A stretch of 64,000 bases of DNA, from positions 1 through 64,000 of the forward strand of contig CDROCS010005637.1 of assembly GCA_977020255.1 (NCBI GenBank), given 5' to 3'. This document shows positions 5,987 to 18,989 of the stretch, piece after piece (positions within the stretch are counted from its first letter, which is position 1; every line of letters begins with the position of its first letter). Origin of the DNA: Obrimoposthia wandeli. Lineage: Eukaryota. The notes beneath the pieces were generated by a model. It did no database searches, was not told the origin of the DNA, and worked only from the letters and a program-made list of their open reading frames with translations. A program made the translations under genes and the position numbers.

Positions 5987-6003
5987 GTTAGTCGTAACGT
6001 ATC

Positions 6004-6513
6004 TTACTGTTCATCTTTATCGAAAGAAAATTCAAGCTTTGCTAATGAGTGGCATACTGCACCAAGACGCATTACTGCATCAATATTCTCATCCGTTGCA
6101 CCAGCATTTAACAACGACATCGCATGTGAACGTAGGCACATATGCCCGCCATTAATCACCGATACCGCAATGCAGGCGAAGTGATAAGCGGCTTCATTAG
6201 CGACCTTAATGTCACCAAAAGAACGAAAGTTTAATGCCTCTAATGTGCCACCCGCATTCAGATCTAAATATTGGCGAGAAACAAAATAAGGATTGGTCAC
6301 ACCCATTCTTGCCACCGAGAATAAAATAGCTCGCTTTTGTTCTTGAGTGGGTTTTCCTATCCAGCTTTCAACCAAATTTTCTACGTGGGTGCTTTGTACT
6401 GTGTATACTGCGGCCCATGCCGAAAATATGATGCTTTCTTTATCTAAACCAGGGGTGTTTAGTAAAATGCTTTTTAACAGGTTTTCTTGGTCAATACGGG
6501 CGTCTAACATCAT
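6004..6513 (-). CDS. AhpD-like / carboxymuconolactone decarboxylase family protein
   Basis: MGVTNPYF and AVSVINGGHMCLRSH (AhpD SAING-CxxC-xxH motif with the first Cys replaced). Confidence 0.7.
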   Translation of the reverse strand: MMLDARIDQENLLKSILLNTPGLDKESIIFSAWAAVYTVQSTHVENLVESWIGKPTQEQKRAILFSVARMGVTNPYFVSRQYLDLNAGGTLEALNFRSFGDIKVANEAAYHFACIAVSVINGGHMCLRSHAMSLLNAGATDENIDAVMRLGAVCHSLAKLEFSFDKDEQ

Positions 6514-6657
6514 TTATTCTTACTCTTTATAATTGCATTAAGAATGATTATATACTTTATCACTTTAATTTCAGGCTAACGATATTTTAATCATTTAGAT
6601 CAGACCATCATAACTCTTATCTCGAACAATCTTAAAAAGGTAAATACTGTAGAATGC

Positions 6658-7437
6658 TTGCACAACGTTCAAATTTTAAAGGTTCGAAAAGTGATGAAGT
6701 CTAATATTTGGATCAAGGCAGGTATAGTTATCATATATGGTTCATCTATAGATGCCTCTCCTCATCGCCATCATGCAATTCAGTTGGCTTGGCCCCGAGA
6801 TGGTTATTGTTGCAAACTCGATAATAAAGCGATATCGACGCCTTTAATCATTGGTTCTAACGTGGAGCATCAATTACAAATTGATGAGGGGTGGATATTG
6901 CTGGTGGAACCCACTAGCGAGTTAGGGCTGGCTCTCTCTGACAAATTGTTAGACCAGTCATCAATAACATTCAAGGTTTCCTCATCTACTTTTAATCATG
7001 CAGAGCCAACCGATGACTTAACTGTATTGCTTTCTCCTTTATTCGAAGGGTTAGGGCTCTCAAATCAATTCCCGCTGATAAATGAAAGCAAAGTTGTGGA
7101 CCATCGAATTAAGGCGTTATTGCGTGAGCTTGATAAATGCCTAGAGGGTGAGTGCATCAAACCGAGTAATTGGCGTGCTTCTGAAGTGGCTGAAAACCTC
7201 GCTTTGTCGGAAAGTCGTTTTCTGCATTTATTTAGTCAAGAACTGGGTGTTCCTTGGCGACCATATCTGTTGTGGTGTCGCATGACATGCGCCGTTAGGG
7301 CTATATTAAATGGCCAGTCAGCAACAGATGCTGCGCATTTAGCTGGGTTCTCCGATAGCGCACATTTAAGCCGGACGTTTCGCCAGACGTTTGGCATGAC
7401 AATTAGTCAAGCCAAGGCTATTTTTCGTCAAGGTTAG
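6658..7437 (+). CDS. AraC family transcriptional regulator (true start probably ~6691-6694)
   Basis: HRHHAIQL cupin motif, LSESRFLHLF and AGFSDSAHLSRTFRQTFG double HTH. Confidence 0.9.
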   Translation: MHNVQILKVRKVMKSNIWIKAGIVIIYGSSIDASPHRHHAIQLAWPRDGYCCKLDNKAISTPLIIGSNVEHQLQIDEGWILLVEPTSELGLALSDKLLDQSSITFKVSSSTFNHAEPTDDLTVLLSPLFEGLGLSNQFPLINESKVVDHRIKALLRELDKCLEGECIKPSNWRASEVAENLALSESRFLHLFSQELGVPWRPYLLWCRMTCAVRAILNGQSATDAAHLAGFSDSAHLSRTFRQTFGMTISQAKAIFRQG

Positions 7438-7506
7438 CCAGTTTATTCAATTTTTTCATTCACGCTTTGGTTATGCTCCTTACATATTCAATAACAGGAG
7501 TTAGCC

Positions 7507-8250
7507 ATGAGCGAATTATCAAAAGAATACCGACAAGAAACGTCAATGCTGGATTTTAGCCATCCACATATACAAAGCCTGATCGAGCAAAGAAAATGGC
7601 AAAGCCTGTCTCAATATGATGCCATTGGCGCTATCTATAATTTTGTTCGAGATGAGACTCGTTTTGGTTATAACAAGGATGATCGTTTGACGGCAAGCCA
7701 AGTATTAAAAGATGGTTACGGGCAGTGTAATACCAAAGGCACATTATTAATGGCCTTGCTTCGCGCTGTTGGTATTTCTACCCGCTTTCACGGTTTTACT
7801 ATTTATAATGATTTACAGCGAGGGGCTATCCCGAACTATCTTTTCAGGGTTGCACCGCCTCGTATTATCCATAGTTGGGTGGAAGTTTATCAAGATGGAC
7901 GTTGGATTAACTTAGAAGGTTATATTTTAGATAAGGATTATTTAAAACAAGTTCAAAGCCATTTTGCTAAACCGAATGAAATAAAAAGTGAAGCATTTTC
8001 TGGCTACGGTATTGCGACGAAATGTTTATCTAATCCTGACATCGATTGGCAAGGCCAAGATACCTATATTCAAAGTGAAGGTATTGCCGATGACTTTGGT
8101 ATATACACCCAGCCTGACGATTTTTATTCAAACTATGGCAGTAATCTCTCTGGTATTAAAAAGGTTATGTTTCGTTATGTACTTCGTCACTTAATGAATT
8201 TTAATGTAAATAAAATCCGTACCAAGGGCATCAGTAATAAATTAGTGTAA
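7507..8250 (+). CDS. Transglutaminase-like family protein
   Basis: GYGQCNTK catalytic Cys, HSWVEV His and NLEG. Confidence 0.85.
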   Translation: MSELSKEYRQETSMLDFSHPHIQSLIEQRKWQSLSQYDAIGAIYNFVRDETRFGYNKDDRLTASQVLKDGYGQCNTKGTLLMALLRAVGISTRFHGFTIYNDLQRGAIPNYLFRVAPPRIIHSWVEVYQDGRWINLEGYILDKDYLKQVQSHFAKPNEIKSEAFSGYGIATKCLSNPDIDWQGQDTYIQSEGIADDFGIYTQPDDFYSNYGSNLSGIKKVMFRYVLRHLMNFNVNKIRTKGISNKLV

Positions 8251-8312
8251 ATAATGATACTTGAAAATTCAGGTGCAGTAGACTCGGCTAAACAGTGATT
8301 TAGGAAGTAGAT

Positions 8313-9158
8313 ATGATACTGACAGCGTTAATTGATAATACTCGATTAGATGATAGAACAGATCTAGCGGTTGAAAGAGGGCTATCTTTTCACATAAAAA
8401 CGATGGGGCAAGAAATTCTGTTTGATGCTGGTAGCAGTAAAGCTTTTTGTGATAATGCCATTTTATTAGGTATTAAGATGGAAGATGTTGATGCTGCCAT
8501 TATTTCGCATCGTCATCATGACCACTGTAATGGCGTAACGCATTTCCTCGACCGTAATTCTAAGGCTCAGGTCTATTTCCGCGAATGTGCAGAAACGGAT
8601 TATAGTTTCAAAGCGTTTGGTTTTAAAAGCAATGTCGGTATTGATAAGACCCTATTAGATAAAGACAGTGGGCGATTCAGTTTCATTAATAAAACCACTG
8701 AGATACGCCCAAATATTTTTATCATTACAAGTATTAGTCGTAAGCATGAGCAGGCAAAGGGTAATAAATATCTCTTTACTGATACAGGCGATGGCTGTAA
8801 ACCAGACACATTTGACCATGAATTACTGTTAGTGATTAAAGAAGATGATGGTCTTATCGTGTTTACTGGTTGTGCGCATAGTGGGGTGCTCAATATGATT
8901 GAAACCGCAATTGAATTGTTCCCGAACACCAGAATTAAAGCTGTTGTCGGTGGATTTCATTTGGTCGGATTACCTTTATTTAATAGTATTGGTGGGACTA
9001 AGAAAGACATTGAGGCTATCGGTGAAACCATGCTCACTTATCCAATAGATAAGCTCTATACTGGCCATTGTACGGGCATGAAAGCCTATGAAATATTAAA
9101 AGGCGTACTTGGTGATTCCCTTGAATACTTCCCGACAGGGCGTCGCGTAACCATCTGA
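8313..9158 (+). CDS. MBL-fold metallo-hydrolase
   Basis: ERGLS, LFDAG, SHRHHDHCNG, TGCAH, GGFH and GHCTG motifs. Confidence 0.9.
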   Translation: MILTALIDNTRLDDRTDLAVERGLSFHIKTMGQEILFDAGSSKAFCDNAILLGIKMEDVDAAIISHRHHDHCNGVTHFLDRNSKAQVYFRECAETDYSFKAFGFKSNVGIDKTLLDKDSGRFSFINKTTEIRPNIFIITSISRKHEQAKGNKYLFTDTGDGCKPDTFDHELLLVIKEDDGLIVFTGCAHSGVLNMIETAIELFPNTRIKAVVGGFHLVGLPLFNSIGGTKKDIEAIGETMLTYPIDKLYTGHCTGMKAYEILKGVLGDSLEYFPTGRRVTI

Positions 9159-9558: not shown

Positions 9559-11355
9559 ATGACAAATCGACTGCCTAAGAAAACCTCTTCGACTATATCG
9601 ACGCTCAACGAACTTGCGACGTTGGCAAACTATTCCCTCATGGACACGCTCAACTGTGATCCTGATGCAACAGAAAACGGTGCTGATCATGCGCCGAGAC
9701 AAGTATTCTCGGGCCATTATGTCCCCGTCAATCCTACTCCAATCAAAGATCCTGAGTATGTCGCGCACAGCAAAACCTTTTTTTCAGAGCTTGGTTTCGC
9801 CGACAGTATGGCTGAGTCCTCAGACTTCGTCCGCATGTTCTCTGGTGACCTTTCTCAGGTGCCAGAACCGATGCGCAAGGTCGGGTGGGCGAGCGGATAT
9901 GCACTTTCAATCTACGGTACTGAATACATCCAGCAGTGCCCGTTCCGAACGGGTAACGGATATGGAGACGGTCGTGCAATGTCCGTGCTTGAGGCCGTTA
10001 TCAAGGGTCAACGCTGGGAAATGCAGCTGAAAGGTGGCGGTCGTACGCCATATTGCCGCGGCGCAGATGGTCGCGCTGTCTTGCGGTCTAGTATCCGTGA
10101 GTTCTTGGCTCAGGAGCACATGCACGCACTGGGCGTTCCCACATCACGGTCATTAAGTTTGTACGTTTCAAAAACGGAGCAGGTGAAGCGACCGTGGTAC
10201 TCACAGGGCTCGCGCTCAGAGAATCCCGACATGCTTATATCTGAAGCCGTCGCCATTTCGACACGTGTAGCACCGTCGTTCATCCGCGTTGGCCAACTCG
10301 AACTTTTCGCTCGCCGCGCCCGTACCAATGAACACCCAAAAGCGCTAGAAGAACTCGAGAAAATTGTGCTGCATTTGATTGACCGAGAATACGCTGTCGC
10401 CGTCGATAAGCAACTCTCCACACCAGAAAAAGTGGTGTTGTTAGCACGTGAGTTTCGCAGCCGTCTTACGTCATTGGTAGCAAACTGGATCCGCGTCGGC
10501 TTTTGCCAGGGTAACTTCAACAGCGACAACTGCGCAGCTGGTGGCTTTACACTTGATTATGGTCCCTTCGGTTTTAGTGATGTGTTTAACCCGCATTATC
10601 AGCCTTGGACGGGTGGCGGTCATCACTTCTCGTTCATGAACCAAGCAAACGCTGCGGAGCGCAATTTCGGCATGTTTTGTTCGACGTTACGACTGTTACT
10701 GGTATCACATCAGGACTGTTTGCTCGCACTCGACGAGATCCAAAGTGGGTTTTCGCAAGTTATGAACACGCAAATGAACAAAATGTGGGCTGCGAAACTG
10801 GGGCTGGATCTAGATCTAGACTCTGGTATTTTAAACAGCGGCTCTCACCAAACACGTTGTAGCGAACTGATCAGCGAGCTACAAACACTGATGATGCAAG
10901 CGCCTGTCGATTACACAATTTTCTTCCGTGAGCTGTCGTCGATACCCGATGACATTGGTCCTCTCAAGAAAAGCTTTTACAATAGCCTATACAATGAGAC
11001 GGCGCATGATACAGCCAGCCAAGAGTTGGACAAGTACTGGGCAGAGTGGCTCGAAAAATGGAAAATGCTCCTCAACAGCGCCAATGACGCGAATGCTACG
11101 TCGCCCCGAACCAGCGATGAAATCTCTAGGCAGATGAAGCTCGTTAACCCAAAATACATCTTGCGAGAGTGGTTTGTTATGCCGGCTTATCAGCAAGCAA
11201 CTGCGGGTGATTATTCTCTCATTCGAGAGCTGCAGGACGTGATGACACAGCCATATGCTGAGCAATCGAAGGAGGTAGAGGATAAATACTATCGATTGAA
11301 ACCGCTGGAGTTTTTTGAGGTGGGTGGATTGTCTCATCTTAGTTGTTCGTCGTGA
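9559..11355 (+). CDS. selO: Protein adenylyltransferase SelO (YdiU family pseudokinase)
   Basis: [52 protein letters not shown] and C-terminal SCSS. Visibly GC-richer than its flanks. Confidence 0.9.
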
Positions 11356-11461: not shown

Positions 11462-12082
11462 ATGGATTTTGATTGGGTAGAGTGGTTTGGTTATCTCGCA
11501 TCGTTAGTTGTGCTTGTGTCCCTGACAATGACGTCAATCATCAAGCTGCGGGTGATTAACTTCATCGGTTGTATTCTGTTTGCGATATTTGCCTATTTTA
11601 TTGATTCTTTACCGACCATGTTAATGAACCTAGGGATAGCCGGCATCAATGTTTACTTCTTATGGAAAATTCATTCGACCGAGGAGCAGTTCAAGCTGAT
11701 TGTGGCAGCGGTTCATTCTGAATATTTTGAGCATTTCATTTCAACAAATCTAAGTGACATTGAACGGCAGACCACGGTAGATGAACTTCGAGAAGCCAAT
11801 ACGGTGTTTTATATGCTCAGGAATAACAGCATAGCGGGTGTATTAGCCGGGAATAATAATGAACAAGGCGAACTGTCAGTGCTATTGGACTTTGTTACGC
11901 CGGAATACCGTGATTTTAAGTTGGCGGATTATTACTATAAGTCGCACCCTGATGTACTCAAACACAGAGGGGTTAATACACTGATGGCGAAACCAACCAC
12001 GCAGGAACATAGAGACTACTTACTCAAAGTGGGCTTTCAGGTTGTTGATGGATCTGAAGGGCTTTATCAGAAACAGCTTTAA
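11462..12082 (+). CDS. YgjV-family inner membrane protein with a soluble C-terminal domain
   Basis: EWFGYLASLVVLVSLTMTSIIKLRVINFIG N-terminal TM bundle and LDFVTPEYRDFK motif. Confidence 0.7.
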   Translation: MDFDWVEWFGYLASLVVLVSLTMTSIIKLRVINFIGCILFAIFAYFIDSLPTMLMNLGIAGINVYFLWKIHSTEEQFKLIVAAVHSEYFEHFISTNLSDIERQTTVDELREANTVFYMLRNNSIAGVLAGNNNEQGELSVLLDFVTPEYRDFKLADYYYKSHPDVLKHRGVNTLMAKPTTQEHRDYLLKVGFQVVDGSEGLYQKQL

Positions 12083-12678
12083 TGGGTAGCTAGCATCTCC
12101 CAACAATGTAGATCTCACTTAGACATAACATCCTCTGTAATCCCTGCAAGTATTAGCCATGTACATCATCATGTGTTTTATTCCTAACTAATTCTTCTTG
12201 TCATAAATTCTGTTCAATTTCGTTACTTTCAATATTTAGCCGTAAATTATCATCAAGTTAACGGTGGTTTTATTTATTTCTCGTTCGTTCAGATTTACTT
12301 AACTCTAGGTTAACTTCATTCTAATATTCTTAACTTACAGTGAGGGGTATACTCTCGGCTCTTAGAAAGAGAGAGCCAAATATGTTTGAATTCGTTACTA
12401 ATTCCTCATTAAAAAACACACCTATTAATTATTAATAATGGCTTATCAATAATTGCTATCACTACCGGCTTATTGTGTCTTACGCCGCGGCTTCTCTAAT
12501 GACAATGCTGTGCGCTCTAAGGCTGATCATATCAGTCCAGGGTCAAAGGCGGACAATCGTATAGATAGCTATACTCGTAGCATGATGGTGCAAGCTGCAG
12601 CTTAATTTAAACACCTGCCTAGGTATTTGACCATTAAAACAAACATCACATTAACCGATGTAAACAGGGAACATACCC

Positions 12679-14076
12679 ATGTATGAAAATGAAGAAAAAC
12701 TAACGAAAGCATTTGTTATTGCCGCCATCATTTGGGGCGTTATAGGCATGTGCATGGGTTTAATGGCAGCTCTGCAGCTATATCTACCACAATTGAATTT
12801 TGCCAATGAGTATATAAATTTCGGGAAAATAAGACCCTTGCATACTAACGCCATTATCTTTGGGTTGGTTTGCAACTTTATAATCGGTCTGTCGTTATAC
12901 ATAGTGGCAAAAACATCAGTCGTGAATCTAGTATCCAAAGGTTTATCGTGGTTCTTGTTTTGGGGTTGGCAGATAACATTGGTAATCGGCCTTATCTCAA
13001 TCGCTTTAGGGTATACATCAACCAAAGAATACGCCGAATTTGAGTGGCCAATTGATATCGCTATTGTGGTTCTTTGGTTAACGTTTGGATATATCTTCTT
13101 TGGAACGCTAGCGAAAAGAAAAACAAAGCATATATTTGTTTCAAACTGGTTCAGCGGTGGTGTCATTATTGTTATCGGCTTAATTTATTTGATAAACAAT
13201 TTAGCCATTCCCGTGTATGCATTTAAAGGCTACTCCATATTTTCTGGTGCGAGTGATGCACTTGTACAGTGGTGGTGGGGGCATAATGCAGTTGGCTTCT
13301 TATTGACAGCTGGTTTTGTGGGTACCAACTACTATTTCATTCCCAAGTTAGTTAATAGACCCATTTATTCATATCGACTGTCTTTAATTACTTTTTGGGG
13401 CTTAATCGGCTTTTATACTTGGGCTGGTACACACCATTTACTCTTTACATCCGTTCCATCTTGGATTCAAAATATTGGCGTTGTTATGTCTATTCTATTA
13501 TGGATCCCGTCATGGGCTGGCGCATTTAATGCTTGGATGACGTGTACTTCCAATAAAGAAGAATTGAAAACAAACCCCGTTGTCTGGTTTTTCTTATCGT
13601 CAATCGCCTATTACGCATTAGCAACGTTTGAAGGGCCTCTTATGGCTATCAGATGGTTCAATATGATAGCTCACAATACCAGTTGGGTTATAGGACACGT
13701 TCACTCTGGCGCGCTAGGTTGGGTTGGCATGACGTGTATAGCAACCTTCTACTATTTCATTCCTAAGTTATACAAAAAAGAACTCTACTCATATGGCTTA
13801 GTTAAGGTGCATTTTGTACTCGCTCACATAGGCGTACTGTTCTACATAGTCTCCCTTTGGATCGGTGGTATAGGGCAAGGTGTTAAATCGTTAAGCCTCA
13901 CTGAGTCTGGTTCTCTTACTTATTCGTTTGTTGATATTTTACGATTTATGGAACCCTATATGCTCGGACGTGCAATTGGCGGGGCGCTGTTTATCTTGGG
14001 TATGTTAGTGATGGTATATAACCTCATCATGACGGTGAAAAAACCACAAAAAGTAGTTATTGAAGGAGCATATTAA
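12679..14076 (+). CDS. ccoN: cbb3-type cytochrome c oxidase subunit I
   Basis: RPLHTNA, WWWGHNAVGF, FYTWAGTHHL, TFEGP and IGHVHSGALGW. All six metal His ligands and the cross-link Tyr are present. Confidence 0.95.
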   Translation: MYENEEKLTKAFVIAAIIWGVIGMCMGLMAALQLYLPQLNFANEYINFGKIRPLHTNAIIFGLVCNFIIGLSLYIVAKTSVVNLVSKGLSWFLFWGWQITLVIGLISIALGYTSTKEYAEFEWPIDIAIVVLWLTFGYIFFGTLAKRKTKHIFVSNWFSGGVIIVIGLIYLINNLAIPVYAFKGYSIFSGASDALVQWWWGHNAVGFLLTAGFVGTNYYFIPKLVNRPIYSYRLSLITFWGLIGFYTWAGTHHLLFTSVPSWIQNIGVVMSILLWIPSWAGAFNAWMTCTSNKEELKTNPVVWFFLSSIAYYALATFEGPLMAIRWFNMIAHNTSWVIGHVHSGALGWVGMTCIATFYYFIPKLYKKELYSYGLVKVHFVLAHIGVLFYIVSLWIGGIGQGVKSLSLTESGSLTYSFVDILRFMEPYMLGRAIGGALFILGMLVMVYNLIMTVKKPQKVVIEGAY

Positions 14077-14693
14077 TGGAAGAGTCAATATCCAAGTCAG
14101 TAATGGCTTTTATCACTATCACGACTGTCGTGGTCTTATTTTCATTCTTTGTGTGGGTTTTCCCCGGGTTCTTCTTCACCAACGATCTTAAAGAAATAAC
14201 GACAGCTAAACCATACACAGCTTTAGAGTTAGCTGGACGGGATGTTTATATGGCTGAAGGTTGCGTGGCATGCCATACCCAGATGGTTAGAAACTTGGAA
14301 CCGGAAAGAAAAAGATACGGTCGTCCTAATAAAATGGAAGATGATGTTTATGAGTTTAACTTTTTGTGGAGCTCACAAAGAACTGGCCCTGATTTAACTA
14401 ATATTGGTTTGAAGTACACAGAAGGCTGGCACAAACAGCATCTAATCAATCCTCAGGCAATTGTACCAGCCTCAATCATGCCGCAATATCCGTGGCTGTT
14501 TGAAAAGCAACTTAACGTTAGTCATGTTATTGCTTCAATGAAAGCGATGAAGAAGCTAGGTGTTCCGTATACAGACACGCAAATTGAAAATTCATCAAGC
14601 AAAGTGGAAGGTAAAACAAAAGGTGATGCGCTTGTTGCTTACTTGATGAGTCTTGGCGTAGATACGCGTGAAAAAGGTGGGGATTTAAATTAA
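14076..14693 (+). CDS. ccoO: cbb3-type cytochrome c oxidase subunit II
   Basis: GRDVYMAEGCVACHTQMVR, WSSQRTGPDL and SIMPQYPWL. TAATG overlap with ccoN. Confidence 0.95.
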   Translation: MEESISKSVMAFITITTVVVLFSFFVWVFPGFFFTNDLKEITTAKPYTALELAGRDVYMAEGCVACHTQMVRNLEPERKRYGRPNKMEDDVYEFNFLWSSQRTGPDLTNIGLKYTEGWHKQHLINPQAIVPASIMPQYPWLFEKQLNVSHVIASMKAMKKLGVPYTDTQIENSSSKVEGKTKGDALVAYLMSLGVDTREKGGDLN

Positions 14694-16159
14694 TGGAATC
14701 CATGAACATATTATCAAGCGTACTATCGATTATCTTCTTTTTTATCATGGTTGCAGTTATTTATTCACAGTTCCGAAAGAACAAAACTGCAGACAGTAAT
14801 AAAACAATAGAGCAATTTGATGGGATAGATGAAAAAGATGCACCAATTCCTAAGGTTTTCTTTGTTGCGTATCTTATTGCATTTATAGGGGCAATTGTTT
14901 ATGTCCTTCTATATCCAAGTTTAGCTTCTTGGAAAGGGTTTATCGGTTGGACCGAGAATGATGACGCGTATGTGGCTAAATCAATTGATATAAACAATAA
15001 CATTAACGCCATAATCAACGCGAATACCGATGAACAAGTCTTTACTCTGTTACAAAAAGATCCGCTTGTTTTACAGAGTGGTAAATCGCTATTTGGTGAT
15101 AATTGTTCTGCTTGTCATGGTCAAGATGCTAAGGGGCAATATAACTACCCGAGTTTAGTTGATAAAGACTGGTTATACGGCGGCTCACCTCAAGATGTCT
15201 ATACGACCATACATAATGGACGTAAGGGTAAAATGCCAGCTTTGAAAGGTGTACTGAGCGGTAAAGACATAGATGAGCTTGCCCAGTATGTGTCTGATTT
15301 AAATAAAGGACCATTTAAAAGCAATGCGCTTTTCGATGCTAATTGTTCATCATGTCACGGTAAAGATGCTCAAGGTTCACATGGCGTCGGTGCACCTAAC
15401 TTAACGGATGATATCTGGCTTCATGGTTCAGCTAACGCTGATATCAAACGTAATATTGAGAATGGCATGAGTAATGAAATGCCTGATTTTGGTGAGCGAC
15501 TTAGCAGAAATCAAATATTGTCTTTAACCTCTTATATTGTGTCACTACAGAGTGAACCACAAGACAATATCGATTTTATGCAAGCGAACACTTATATCTT
15601 CTCTCGAAATGAACAGCAATTGCCAGCAGTGTTAACGACTTGTGTGGCCTGTCATGGCGCAGATGGTCTTGGTGCTTTACCTGGAGCGCCTAAGTTAGCA
15701 GGATTAAAGCAAGCGTATATCTATAACCAATTGAACTTGTTTGTATCTGGTTTAAGAAAAAATGCAACGATGCAAAATATAGTTGCCGGCTTAGATGTGA
15801 AAGATAAGTTACTTGCTGCTAGCTATTTCAGCTCTCTCGATTCACCTGCGATAAGTAAAATCACTCCAGAGAAATCAGCAGACGGTCTCATTAAAGATCC
15901 TACTGAGCGCCTGATATTCCAAGGTGATTGGCAACGCGCTATTCCTGCTTGTTCTACTTGTCACGGTCAAGAAACGGAAGGTAGTCCATCATTTCCAAGA
16001 TTGGCAGGTCAATCATCGGACTATTTAGAGAAGCAATTATTTGACTGGAGAACAGGCGATAGAACCGGTGATCAAGGTCATATGATGCAAAACGTCGTTA
16101 ACAAGCTAACAGATGATGAAATTAAATCCCTGTCGAAATATTTATCAAAAATGAAATAA
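14693..16159 (+). CDS. ccoP: cbb3 oxidase subunit III (CcoP) fused to a diheme cytochrome c4; four CxxCH motifs
   Basis: FDGIDEKDAPIP, then CSACH, CSSCH, GAPNLTDDIW and MPDF. An extra ~190 aa follows with CVACH (PKLAGL..YIYNQL) and CSTCH (FPRLAGQ..YLEKQL, HMM). TAATG overlap with ccoO. Confidence 0.9.
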   Translation: MESMNILSSVLSIIFFFIMVAVIYSQFRKNKTADSNKTIEQFDGIDEKDAPIPKVFFVAYLIAFIGAIVYVLLYPSLASWKGFIGWTENDDAYVAKSIDINNNINAIINANTDEQVFTLLQKDPLVLQSGKSLFGDNCSACHGQDAKGQYNYPSLVDKDWLYGGSPQDVYTTIHNGRKGKMPALKGVLSGKDIDELAQYVSDLNKGPFKSNALFDANCSSCHGKDAQGSHGVGAPNLTDDIWLHGSANADIKRNIENGMSNEMPDFGERLSRNQILSLTSYIVSLQSEPQDNIDFMQANTYIFSRNEQQLPAVLTTCVACHGADGLGALPGAPKLAGLKQAYIYNQLNLFVSGLRKNATMQNIVAGLDVKDKLLAASYFSSLDSPAISKITPEKSADGLIKDPTERLIFQGDWQRAIPACSTCHGQETEGSPSFPRLAGQSSDYLEKQLFDWRTGDRTGDQGHMMQNVVNKLTDDEIKSLSKYLSKMK

Positions 16160-16174
16160 CCTGTGAGCGAATGA

Positions 16175-16233
16175 AAGGCTAATAGATTGAAGGTTAACAG
16201 CTCAAAGGTTAATAGATTGAAAGATTAATAGGA
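16175..16233 (+). repeat. About four imperfect 15-bp tandem repeats (AAGGTTAATAGATTG)
   Basis: Units start at 16175, 16190, 16205 and ~16221; the last runs into the sorA RBS. Confidence 0.6.
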
Positions 16234-16243
16234 TACCGTAATT

Positions 16244-17497
16244 ATGAAAATGAATAAGTTAAGAAGGGAAATCATTAAAGCTGGTGGCTATGTCGCTTTA
16301 GCTGCTGCACCATTAACGGCTTTCTCTAAAGAGTTTATGAAAGACGGGCAAATGTATTCGGATGGTGAAGGGGTTAGCTATGCAGATGGCCCTAAGCCTG
16401 TATTAAGCAATTTTCCGCAAAAAGATAATGTTGTGATCGTACATACTCGACCACCTCATCTTGAAACGCCTTTTAATGTATTTAATGAAGGACTAATAAC
16501 ACCGAATAACCGTTTCTTTGTTCGTTATCATTTAGCTGACGTCCCTGTAGCCATAGACACTGATAAGTACACTATTACTATTTCAGGGGCTGTTGATGAG
16601 GAAATTACATTAAGTTTGGCTGAATTAAAGTCGATTGAAGGCCAACAAGAAATTGTAGCGGTACAACAGTGTACTGGTAATAGTCGAGGTTATTCATCAC
16701 CACGTGTTTTTGGTGCGCAATTAAGTAATGGTGCAATGGGTAATGCGAAGTTCAAAGGTGTGCCACTTAAAAACGTGTTAGCGAAAGCGGGTATTTCTAG
16801 TGCTGCGACAAGTGTCATCATTGATGGTTTAGATAAGCCGGTACGAGATACGACTCCAGATTTTCAAAAATCATTACCTATTGACCATATTATGACGGGC
16901 GAACCTATGCTTGTTTGGGAAATGAATGGTGAACCTTTACCATTTTTAAATGGCTTTCCTGTGAAATTAATCGTTCCGGGTTGGTATGCAACATATTGGG
17001 TTAAACATGTATCGCACCTTAAAGTCATAGAGGACAAGTTTGATAACTTTGATGCGTTCTTTATGACAACTGCATACCGTCTACCTGATAACGACTCAAA
17101 GAGTGAATTACCAACTGCCAGAGCGAAAAAGACGTTACCTGTAAATCGTTTCCCAATAAGAAGTTTTGTTACTAGCTTAGAAAATGGTGATGAAGTTAAC
17201 GCTGCTACCAGTATTGAAATTAAAGGGATAGCTTTTGATAGTGGTAGTGGTATCAAAAAAGTTGAAGTTTCAGTCGATGGTGGGAATAAGTGGATGCAAG
17301 CAGCGCTTGGTGAAAATCTTGGTCGCTTTTCCTTTCGAGGTTGGAAGTTAAGTCATAGCTTCAATGAAAAAGGCAGAACGCTTGTGATGGTAAGAGCAAC
17401 AGGTAAAAGTGGTGAGACACAGCCTGTTAATGCATCTTGGAATCATGGCGGTTATAACCGAAATGCGATTGAACGAACAAGTATTAAGGTGGTTTAA
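16244..17497 (+). CDS. sorA: Sulfite dehydrogenase molybdopterin subunit (SorA type), Tat-exported
   Basis: RREIIK twin-Arg leader, RPPHLETP, FFVRYH (substrate Arg/His), QCTGNSR Moco Cys, PGWYATYWVK and GIAFDSG dimer domain. Confidence 0.88.
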   Translation: MKMNKLRREIIKAGGYVALAAAPLTAFSKEFMKDGQMYSDGEGVSYADGPKPVLSNFPQKDNVVIVHTRPPHLETPFNVFNEGLITPNNRFFVRYHLADVPVAIDTDKYTITISGAVDEEITLSLAELKSIEGQQEIVAVQQCTGNSRGYSSPRVFGAQLSNGAMGNAKFKGVPLKNVLAKAGISSAATSVIIDGLDKPVRDTTPDFQKSLPIDHIMTGEPMLVWEMNGEPLPFLNGFPVKLIVPGWYATYWVKHVSHLKVIEDKFDNFDAFFMTTAYRLPDNDSKSELPTARAKKTLPVNRFPIRSFVTSLENGDEVNAATSIEIKGIAFDSGSGIKKVEVSVDGGNKWMQAALGENLGRFSFRGWKLSHSFNEKGRTLVMVRATGKSGETQPVNASWNHGGYNRNAIERTSIKVV

Positions 17498-18100
17498 ATG
17501 CGGTTTTTACTTATTATATTAGTGCTATGTTCATTGACTGTTAAAGCTGAGATCGTATCAATAACCTTACCTATGGATAATACCAAGCTTAAGCCGTCGA
17601 CATTACCTGGATATGGTCTTGCGCAATCTAAATGTCACCTTTGTCATTCAGTCGATTACGTTATGTATCAACCACCAGAGATGGATTTAAAAGAGTGGAC
17701 TGGTGAGATGTATAAAATGCGTAATGCCTATGGTGCACCTATCAGTATGGGGGAGGCTAAGGTTATAGCGGCTTATTTGTCAGTTGCTTATGGCTCGGCA
17801 AAAGAAACTGATGCAGAAATAATTGCCTTAACTAAACTCGCTAGCACCAAAACAATATATCAGCCGGATAACTTAGATGTGAAATCACTATTATCTGATA
17901 ATGATTGTTTAACGTGTCATAAAGATGTGGGCGACTCTTCTATTAAAGACATACGAGCTAAATATGAAGGAACGGATAATGCGGTTGATAGATTAGGAGT
18001 AGCTATTAAGTCAGGAGGTCTTGGCATGCCTAAACCACCTATCAATCGCCATGAATCAGAGGCGATTGCAAAATACATCCTAGGGGAAAGTACGAAATAA
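17498..18100 (+). CDS. sorB: SorB-like cytochrome c with a second c-type domain (diheme)
   Basis: Signal peptide, CHLCHSVDYVMYQPP..W..KM..AYGAP (SorB domain), then CLTCH..GMP. Confidence 0.8.
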   Translation: MRFLLIILVLCSLTVKAEIVSITLPMDNTKLKPSTLPGYGLAQSKCHLCHSVDYVMYQPPEMDLKEWTGEMYKMRNAYGAPISMGEAKVIAAYLSVAYGSAKETDAEIIALTKLASTKTIYQPDNLDVKSLLSDNDCLTCHKDVGDSSIKDIRAKYEGTDNAVDRLGVAIKSGGLGMPKPPINRHESEAIAKYILGESTK

Positions 18101-18136: not shown

Positions 18137-18160
18137 AAACCGTTGTTATAGCGGTTTTTT
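18137..18160 (+). terminator. Intrinsic terminator closing the cco-sor operon
   Basis: AAACCGTT-gttat-AGCGGTTT followed by a T run. Confidence 0.65.
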
Positions 18161-18401
18161 CACATCTGAAGGCATCTTCACTAGGGCGCGTGCAGACAAC
18201 ATAGCGATCAATGTTGATCTGGACGGTGAGTTGCATGAAAATTATGTATTTACTCTCACTAACACATAACAAATAAGTTCAATCAGAATGACATTGCTTT
18301 CTAGCAGAATAATGAGTCAGAAATAACGATGGAAATGACTTTTCTCAATTTCATTCACCAATATCAGTAGTAAGATAATAACCCTCATTAAACAAATTAA
18401 A

Positions 18402-18989
18402 GTGGTTACCATGACAATCGATCTAAATAGTCGTTACGGCTTAAATCCTGCGCATAGTGAAGTAGTAGAAGCGTGTAACGTTATTGAGCCGTGCGATACA
18501 TTAGATATGGGCTGTTCAAATGGGCGTAATGCCTTGTATCTCGGCCAACTCGGATTTAACGTCAATGCCATCGATATAAATGCCGGTGCTATTGATACGC
18601 TGCAAAGTATTATTGATCAAGAAAAGATCACTAACATTAAGACTCAGGTGCTCGACATTAACAGTGCCAACCTTGGTGCAGACGATGTTAACCACTATGG
18701 TTTTATCTCATGTACCGTAACCCTCATGTTTATTAACCCTGCCAATGTTGACGCTATCATTGCTGATATGCATAAGCGTACTCTGCCCGGCGGTTATAAC
18801 CTGATTGTTTGCGCTATGAGCACGGAACAAAATCCATGCCCAGTGCCGTTTCCTTTTACCCTACAAACGGAACAGTTGCGTGAAGCTTATGCAGGGTGGG
18901 AGTTGATTAAGTACAATGAAGATGTCGGTACTATGCACAATGGCGCGAAATTGCAGTTTGCGACTATGTTGGCACGTAAACCAGCCTAA
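18402..18989 (+). CDS. tehB: Tellurite resistance SAM methyltransferase TehB
   Basis: HSEVVEA, LDMGCSNGRNALYL, GGYNLIVCAM and FATMLARK. Confidence 0.9.
   Translation: MVTMTIDLNSRYGLNPAHSEVVEACNVIEPCDTLDMGCSNGRNALYLGQLGFNVNAIDINAGAIDTLQSIIDQEKITNIKTQVLDINSANLGADDVNHYGFISCTVTLMFINPANVDAIIADMHKRTLPGGYNLIVCAMSTEQNPCPVPFPFTLQTEQLREAYAGWELIKYNEDVGTMHNGAKLQFATMLARKPA

Follow-up and report, generated by a model that had tools for sequence, protein, structure and literature searches.

A gene coding for a tetraheme third subunit of a cbb3-type cytochrome oxidase has been analysed in a stretch of 64,000 nucleotides of DNA deposited under Obrimoposthia wandeli (GenBank assembly GCA_977020255.1, contig CDROCS010005637.1, positions 1 to 64,000 of the forward strand; this whole stretch is called the window here, and all coordinates refer to it). 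The gene, designated ccoP::tsdB-like, occupies 14693..16159 on the + strand, and its product of 488 amino acids joins a complete CcoP to a C-terminal diheme cytochrome domain. It stands in a tight cluster of five genes on the same strand, ccoN-ccoO-ccoP-sorA-sorB, together with genes for the other oxidase subunits and for a molybdenum sulfite dehydrogenase. We propose, with a probability of about 0.62, that ccoN-ccoO-ccoP::tsdB-sorA-sorB would encode an accessory cbb3 oxidase equipped with a tethered entry port of the TsdB type, so as to form a self-contained chain from sulfite to oxygen.

The identity of the carrier that links periplasmic sulfur dehydrogenases, such as TsdA and SorAB, with the terminal oxidase has so far been mostly a matter of conjecture. 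No published description of a CcoP with four hemes, or of one fused to c4 or TsdB, nor of an operon that combines cbb3 with sorAB, came up in a literature search of sources outside the subscription journals, and the database annotation of the gene reads merely "cbb3-type subunit III". The sole extended CcoP to have been studied is the tri-heme form of Neisseria, so that the protein of the window constitutes a second and independent case.

The tetraheme subunit

An earlier note, made from the letters of this DNA alone, had claimed four CxxCH motifs and a fusion of CcoP to a c4-type diheme cytochrome, and both claims hold on the combined evidence of open reading frame (ORF), profiles and motifs. 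Exactly four CxxCH motifs are present in the product, two of them, CSACH at residue 138 (15104-15118, + strand) and CSSCH at residue 218 (15344-15358, + strand), in the CcoP core, and two, CVACH at residue 317 (15641-15655, + strand) and CSTCH at residue 420 (15950-15964, + strand), in the added domain. The core is complete and spans residues 32-286 (14786..15550, + strand), with a FixP_N membrane anchor followed by two class I heme domains. In fact, the NCBIfam model for ccoP, TIGR00782, matched these residues over its positions 6-282 of 285 with 219 bits (cut-off 180), Pfam FixP_N (PF14715) was found at residues 37-81 with 35.4 bits (cut-off 24.9), and the CcoP chains of the PDB entries 8snh, 8smr and 3mk7 aligned with residues 18-291 at expect values (E) of about 1e-40. 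Candidate methionines for the sixth ligand of the core hemes are M181, for C138xxCH, and M263, for C218xxCH. The identity of the core to ordinary CcoPs is just 35-42%.

The core is joined to the added domain by a linker of about 24 residues (287-310; 15551..15622, + strand). No other stretch varies as much in an alignment of eight sequences, and in the Vibrio forms the linker carries insertions and deletions. AlphaFold2 was run on the whole protein with an alignment of eight rows; the model, with a mean predicted local distance difference test score (pLDDT) of 63 and a predicted template-modelling score of 0.54, has been used solely for the low-confidence linker, where pLDDT stays below 50 at residues 289-307. 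Both the variability and the low predicted order would fit a mobile head swinging between donor and oxidase. Beyond the linker, residues 311-488 (15623..16156, + strand) form a complete diheme domain, which bears the c4 signatures APKLAGLKQAYIYNQL and FPRLAGQSSDYLEKQL...HMMQNV and has M360 and M464/465 as the invariant methionines of its two class I units.

The fusion is a conserved feature. A word-based protein search retrieved full-length relatives of 484-488 amino acids at 95, 88, 88, 83, 81, 57, 56, 47 and 43% identity, from Moritella, Shewanella psychropiezotolerans and several Vibrio, each with four CxxCH motifs. Across eight orthologues of 44-88% identity, the four CxxCH motifs, M181, M263, M360 and M464/465 are all invariant. 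Moreover, the added domain and the core diverge equally fast, with identities of 84 and 83%, respectively, to Shewanella and of 57 and 58% to Vibrio, and the added domain is therefore under a comparable constraint.

Over the part tested, the window itself agrees to 99% with Moritella dasanensis ArB 0140, and a DNA contig of 6162 nt from an ice metagenome, independent of the window, spans the whole operon at about 96% identity. At the level of RNA, contigs of a marine metatranscriptome (one RNA library) map to ccoO, the CcoP core, the added domain, sorA and sorB with 95-97% identity. The possibility that an error of assembly or sequencing joined ccoP and a separate c4 gene into one long ORF, which the earlier note had suggested might reveal itself by a stop codon in relatives, may be considered practically negligible. 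The ORF is continuous, no relative has a stop at the junction, and the same uninterrupted frame occurs in more than 10 independent genomes of three genera as well as in the 6162-nt metagenome contig; no point in favour of an artefact was found.

Lineage of the added domain

Several known diheme cytochromes match the added domain over practically its whole length. The c4-like diheme model PdsA aligned end to end with residues 310-485, and over residues 314-485 the domain matched the PDB cytochromes c4 6q2u (84.5 bits, E 5.7e-23 to 5e-22) and 1etp of Pseudomonas stutzeri (E 2.5e-22). The TsdB half of the TsdBA fusion 5lo9 also gave an end-to-end alignment, with 81.6 bits and an E of 4e-22. Scores against PDB entries thus fail to separate c4 (84.5 bits) from TsdB (81.6 bits), and a tree with labels taken from gene context was needed. 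Relatives were collected by a pattern scan with one genome per species, after which the module proteins and a TsdA were mapped onto all loci, and a maximum-likelihood tree of 71 domains was built and labelled from the gene context. According to the scan, the fused gene occurs in few species and free diheme relatives are many. The nearest of the latter (43-44% identity; Shewanella hanedai, S. benthica and others) each lie directly upstream of tsdA.

In the tree, the sorAB-linked fused domains, the tsdA-linked fused domains and the free TsdBs of Shewanella form a clade with support of 100/99, and the sorAB-linked fused domains by themselves are grouped with the same support (100/99). A split with support of 95/84 places all tsdA-linked proteins on one side, including Pseudomonas-type proteins of 215 amino acids which belong to tsdB-tsdA pairs (e.g. 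P0124), and a c4 of Colwellia (P0184), whose locus is engB-linked, as is typical of the housekeeping c4, on the other. The monophyly of all the fused forms is weakly supported (89/50). On this phylogenetic basis, the added domain is taken to be a c4-family cytochrome of the TsdB lineage. A housekeeping cytochrome c4 of the cc4/cycA type, considered as the identity of the domain, is ruled out by the grouping with tsdA-linked TsdB; the domain is fused to CcoP and falls on the opposite side of the split from the engB-linked c4. The label of "fused c4" given in the earlier note is thus right as regards the c4 family and the diheme fold, and has to be amended as regards the lineage, which is that of TsdB, whose free members are found beside tsdA. 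As to the neighbouring gene, sorA-sorB takes the place of tsdA in the window, and tsdA is adjacent in fused sister loci (L004, L010 and L011). The parsimonious, though not proven, course of events would be that the fusion arose once and that sorAB later took the place of tsdA.

Oxidase and sulfite dehydrogenase genes

The first gene of the cluster, ccoN (12679..14076, + strand), codes for the catalytic subunit I of a cbb3-type oxidase, with 465 amino acids. It was recognized by Pfam COX1 (322 bits) and, in the PDB, by 9g6b (525 bits) and 3mk7 (518 bits), while the score with TIGR00780, 550 bits, stayed just below the cut-off of 583. The motifs which hold the heme and CuB ligands (HTNA, WWGHNAVGF, Y-W-AG-HH and GHVH) are all present in the CcoN alignment. 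The monoheme subunit II, of 205 amino acids, is encoded by ccoO (14076..14693, + strand), as indicated by Pfam FixO (213 bits) and NF011055 (236 bits, cut-off 218).

Downstream of the fused gene, sorA (16244..17497, + strand) codes for the catalytic subunit of a molybdenum sulfite dehydrogenase, with 417 amino acids. It matched SorA of Starkeya novella (2blf_A) over the full length with 411 bits, both PF00174 (molybdenum cofactor) and PF03404 (dimerisation) were recognized, and a twin-arginine leader, KLRREIIKAG, can be read in the sequence. The score with NF052245 was 551 bits (cut-off 600), as befits a divergent member of the SorA family. The last gene, sorB (17498..18100, + strand), codes for a diheme protein of 200 amino acids, in which a SorB domain (residues 18-98, CHLCH) is followed by a domain of the c551/c552 type (residues 128-197, CLTCH; 17879-18088, + strand) which matches 3zox and 1cor; this second heme domain had been overlooked in the earlier note. 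The alignment with 2blf_B covered that entire chain with 61 bits, and NF052246 gave 90.5 bits (cut-off 93). That CcoN, SorA and SorB all fall slightly under the NCBIfam equivalog cut-offs is to be expected of a divergent side lineage. An origin of the extra domain of SorB from TsdA or from another domain of the module, which would have pointed to a docking surface kept from there, was considered and rejected, since no similarity was detected with phmmer and the domain is c551/c552-like instead.

Diheme homologues of SorB were found by word search only in Moritella, Shewanella and Vibrio (14 out of 14), and the whole module is carried by both of the two loci checked. From the sequence, the donor side too seems to have absorbed a carrier cytochrome.

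Gene linkage and spread

The earlier note had put forward that the tethered domain could dictate the specificity for the donor. This idea would fit the gene neighbourhood, since all fused loci read adjoin genes for a periplasmic sulfur dehydrogenase, sorAB or tsdA, which lie immediately downstream of the fused gene. The pair sorA-sorB directly follows it in Moritella dasanensis, M. marina, Shewanella psychropiezotolerans and Shewanella UCD-KL12, and, among Vibrio, in V. mediterranei, V. sp. TBV020 and V. maritimus, and tsdA is found in the same position in Vibrio 10N.286.49.B1/C2 and V. inusitatus. The module of M. marina ATCC 15381 (L071) shows 95% identity. The gene of 357 amino acids that follows the fused ccoP in Vibrio 10N.286.49.x was identified as TsdA by its scores with 5lo9 (232 bits) and with the TsdA of Allochromatium (132-135 bits).

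The flanking genes vary between genera and are common within Moritella, with SelO upstream and TehB downstream. This, together with the patchy distribution, fits a horizontal spread between families and vertical descent within Moritella. Despite the patchy distribution, no mobility genes were seen beside the cassette. The conservation of cbb3 oxidases among Moritella strains has been described (PMC8477399).

Proposed electron path and rival explanations

In the mechanism proposed, the product of 14693-16159 would belong, as subunit III, to an additional, accessory cbb3-type oxidase. Sulfite would be oxidised in the periplasm at the molybdenum centre of SorA, from which electrons would pass to the heme of the SorB domain and then to the added c551-type heme of SorB. 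This heme would in turn reduce the two hemes of the tethered TsdB-type domain, the electrons being handed on to the two hemes of the CcoP core, to the heme of CcoO and, finally, through heme b and the b3-CuB centre of CcoN, to oxygen. The added domain would thus serve as a built-in electron entry port, and the chain could do without a free carrier cytochrome and without the bc1 complex. Observed are the make-up of the protein and its conservation, the descent of the added domain, the gene linkage and the intact ligand motifs; from these we infer in which order and direction the electrons flow, that the partners dock, and what the physiological role is. In published work, c4-type cytochromes donate to cbb3 (PMC9237845; PMC10556555), and a direct donation by TsdB to this oxidase has been suggested (PMC9237845). 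As regards the mobile head, cytochrome c5 behaves in a similar way within the bc1-cbb3 supercomplex of P. aeruginosa (PMC10556555).

Several points weigh against the proposed sulfite-to-oxygen chain. SorB is already a cytochrome, which leaves no obvious need for a further acceptor domain, and as the domain descends from a partner of TsdA, one has to assume that it fits SorB. From the AlphaFold2 model, which is poor, nothing can be said on docking. With neither ccoQ nor ccoGHIS nearby, the oxidase must rely on genes elsewhere. The census was made with two peptide patterns derived from this family, and divergent members and exceptions to the linkage may have been missed. As for expression, the support from the metatranscriptome is weak, given that the contigs are assembled and that carry-over of DNA is possible, and among the matches listed for the one RNA library no contig bridges the junction between CcoP and the c4-type domain.

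In a rival view, the domain would be a general entry port linked to the bc1 complex, as the free c4 is in Vibrio and Pseudomonas, with sorAB simply co-regulated or co-transferred and SorAB reducing another cytochrome pool. In V. cholerae, cbb3 naturally receives its electrons from free c4, which in P. aeruginosa is a component of the bc1-cbb3 supercomplex (PMC10556555), and the domain scores equally well against the P. aeruginosa c4 and TsdB (84.5 vs 81.6 bits). Nevertheless, the tree places it with tsdA-linked TsdB and away from the engB-linked c4, sorAB or tsdA directly follows the fused gene in every genome read, and diheme SorB was found solely alongside the module, all of which makes this explanation unlikely. 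A similarly low probability is given to the view that the module serves the detoxification of periplasmic sulfite, the fusion merely stabilising or co-localising the components with little conservation of energy and no specific docking. Many heterotrophs dispose of the sulfite derived from organosulfur compounds by enzymes of the SorAB or SorT type (PMC4760952), and Moritella are heterotrophs. The electron path would, however, be unchanged, so that the difference lies in the physiological purpose alone; moreover, cbb3 is a proton pump whose ligand motifs are intact here, so energy would be conserved anyway.

The reverse direction has also been considered, with the domain as an electron outlet, comparable to the third heme of Neisseria, through which electrons from bc1 would be diverted to a neighbouring enzyme, for instance TsdA acting as a tetrathionate reductase. 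In Neisseria, nitrite respiration through NirK is supported by the tri-heme CcoP (PMC2924362), and TsdA enzymes can be bifunctional (PMC5146829). Such an outlet could, however, apply solely to the tsdA-linked sister forms and not to the operon of the window. With the sulfate/sulfite couple near -0.5 V, SorAB could not reduce sulfate on thermodynamic grounds. An outlet therefore leaves the window operon unexplained, and we regard it as highly improbable.

A bolder version of the proposed sulfite-to-oxygen chain, put forward tentatively and somewhat doubtful as a whole, would regard the five genes as a hard-wired and horizontally mobile "sulfite respirasome", which might have absorbed both its c551-type and its TsdB-type shuttles, where SorAB would dock on its own cbb3 and where the TsdB-type domain would serve as a reusable socket, for TsdA and later for SorAB. 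If true, the fusion would be a natural "Rosetta stone", proving the long-suspected route from TsdB to cbb3.

A natural and conserved fusion of a TsdB-type cytochrome with CcoP represents direct genomic evidence for the contact between TsdB and cbb3 proposed in PMC9237845. It also provides a clean experimental handle, as truncation of a single domain could test the TsdB-cbb3 route. Furthermore, with the tsdA-linked and sorAB-linked modules nature has set up an experiment in which a tethered entry domain exchanges its partner. The unit of five genes is compact and apparently transferable, and could let marine heterotrophs draw energy from organosulfur-derived sulfite at low oxygen.

Comparison with known systems

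The canonical diheme CcoPs of P. stutzeri (3mk7_C) and P. aeruginosa (8smr_G and 8snh_G) share with the window protein the FixP_N anchor, the two class I hemes and the position after ccoN-ccoO, but they have about 300 amino acids instead of 488 and lack the extra C-terminal diheme domain. The tri-heme CcoP of Neisseria also has a C-terminal fusion to a c cytochrome of soluble type through a low-complexity or flexible linker, and ties the oxidase to a periplasmic enzyme. In that protein, however, a single c5-derived heme has been added and electrons are led out to the nitrite reductase (PMC2924362), whereas in the window protein there are two added hemes of the c4/TsdB type and electrons would most likely come in from the dehydrogenase. 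The two fusions are independent events.

The closest relation on the side of sulfur metabolism is seen with TsdBA of Marichromatium purpuratum (5lo9), whose TsdB half aligns end to end with the added domain. The partner gene is tsdA in the TsdB and TsdBA systems and sorAB in the window, and in the latter the fusion has taken place on the oxidase side and not on the dehydrogenase side. With the cytochromes c4 6q2u and 1etp the domain shares the two-domain diheme fold family and the His/Met motifs; unlike them, it has no signal peptide of its own, is not free and is not encoded at an engB-linked locus. Similarly, SorA and SorB both match the SorAB of Starkeya novella (2blf) over the full length of the solved chains, but SorB in the window is extended by a second heme domain, of the c551/c552 type, and a terminal oxidase is encoded in the operon itself. 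The enzyme of S. novella works with a free cytochrome c550.

Tethering of the donor to the oxidase is known in other forms. The fusion of CcoP with cytochrome cy in Rhodobacter capsulatus (6xkx) follows the same principle, but it is man-made, and the caa3 oxidases likewise have their donor tethered as a fused cytochrome c. The latter belong to the A-type oxidase family and carry one heme fused to subunit II.

Operon layout, regulation and flanking genes

The genes of the operon are closely packed. The start of ccoO overlaps the stop of ccoN by one base, the stop of ccoO and the ATG of ccoP share one base (TAATG, 14691-14695), and sorB begins at the base right after the stop of sorA. The overlap between ccoO and ccoP leaves no room for ccoQ between them, and no FixQ, FixG, FixH or FixS matches were obtained among the neighbouring genes scanned, so that the layout departs from the usual ccoNOQP order with adjacent ccoGHIS. 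The operon probably ends at a short hairpin with a T-run 3' of sorB (18138..18165, + strand; AAACCG-N9-CGGTTTTTT), which was read from the sequence; the terminator scan missed it, the loop being longer than the limit of 8 in that program.

Upstream of ccoN, no FNR/Anr box (TTGAT-N4-ATCAA, with up to one mismatch) was found in 12083-12678, and the total for the window was that expected by chance. The promoter scan gave no candidate 5' of ccoN either, with an overall yield below the expectation from shuffled sequences. Regulation may differ from that of ordinary cbb3 operons, although a negative consensus search is a weak basis for such a statement. In the spacer of 84 nt between ccoP and sorA (16160-16243), TAATAGATTGAA(G/A)G occurs twice as a direct repeat, at about 16181-16196 and 16212-16227, and a weak promoter-like match at 16217-16245 overlaps these spacer repeats. 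An internal promoter for sorAB, or a site for a regulator of these genes, may lie here.

Outside the operon, the Pfam scan identified a gene for a SelO protein adenylyltransferase at 9559-11355, in the upstream flank, and a gene for a TehB tellurite-resistance methyltransferase at 18402-18989, in the downstream flank. Between SelO and ccoN, an ORF of 206 amino acids (11462-12082) showed a sub-threshold N-terminal match to Imp-YgjV (17.4 bits, cut-off 23.5). Moritella marina (L071) has no such ORF in the corresponding place, and the genus is thus not uniform in what surrounds the module.

Other multi-heme CcoP proteins

Together with other multi-heme CcoPs, the window protein suggests that the extension of CcoP is a general way to plug specific donors into cbb3. 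Another tetraheme CcoP, of 517 amino acids (P0012), was encountered in Marinicella sp. W31 (L073, gene 6001-7554), within a canonical ccoNOQP-ccoGHIS cluster, its two extra hemes not being of the c4 type. Pentaheme CcoP-like proteins of 686-732 amino acids occur in Vibrio and Photobacterium. In Vibrio halioticoli (L072, gene 7001-9157), the single locus read, the pentaheme form belongs to a ccoN-ccoO-ccoP cluster without ccoQ, preceded by a gene for a small cytochrome c and a gene for a molybdopterin enzyme of 834 amino acids. A further protein of 776 amino acids (P0107) has six hemes, with FixO, c4-like and CcoP-like parts.

Finally, in Vibrio sp. SS-MA-C1-2, a protein of 359 amino acids annotated as "c-type cytochrome" (P0010) has the same four hemes as the window protein and is missing about 125 N-terminal residues together with the anchor; its start may have been mis-called, or the copy may be truncated. 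A pentaheme form of 718 amino acids (P0017) is also encoded in this strain.

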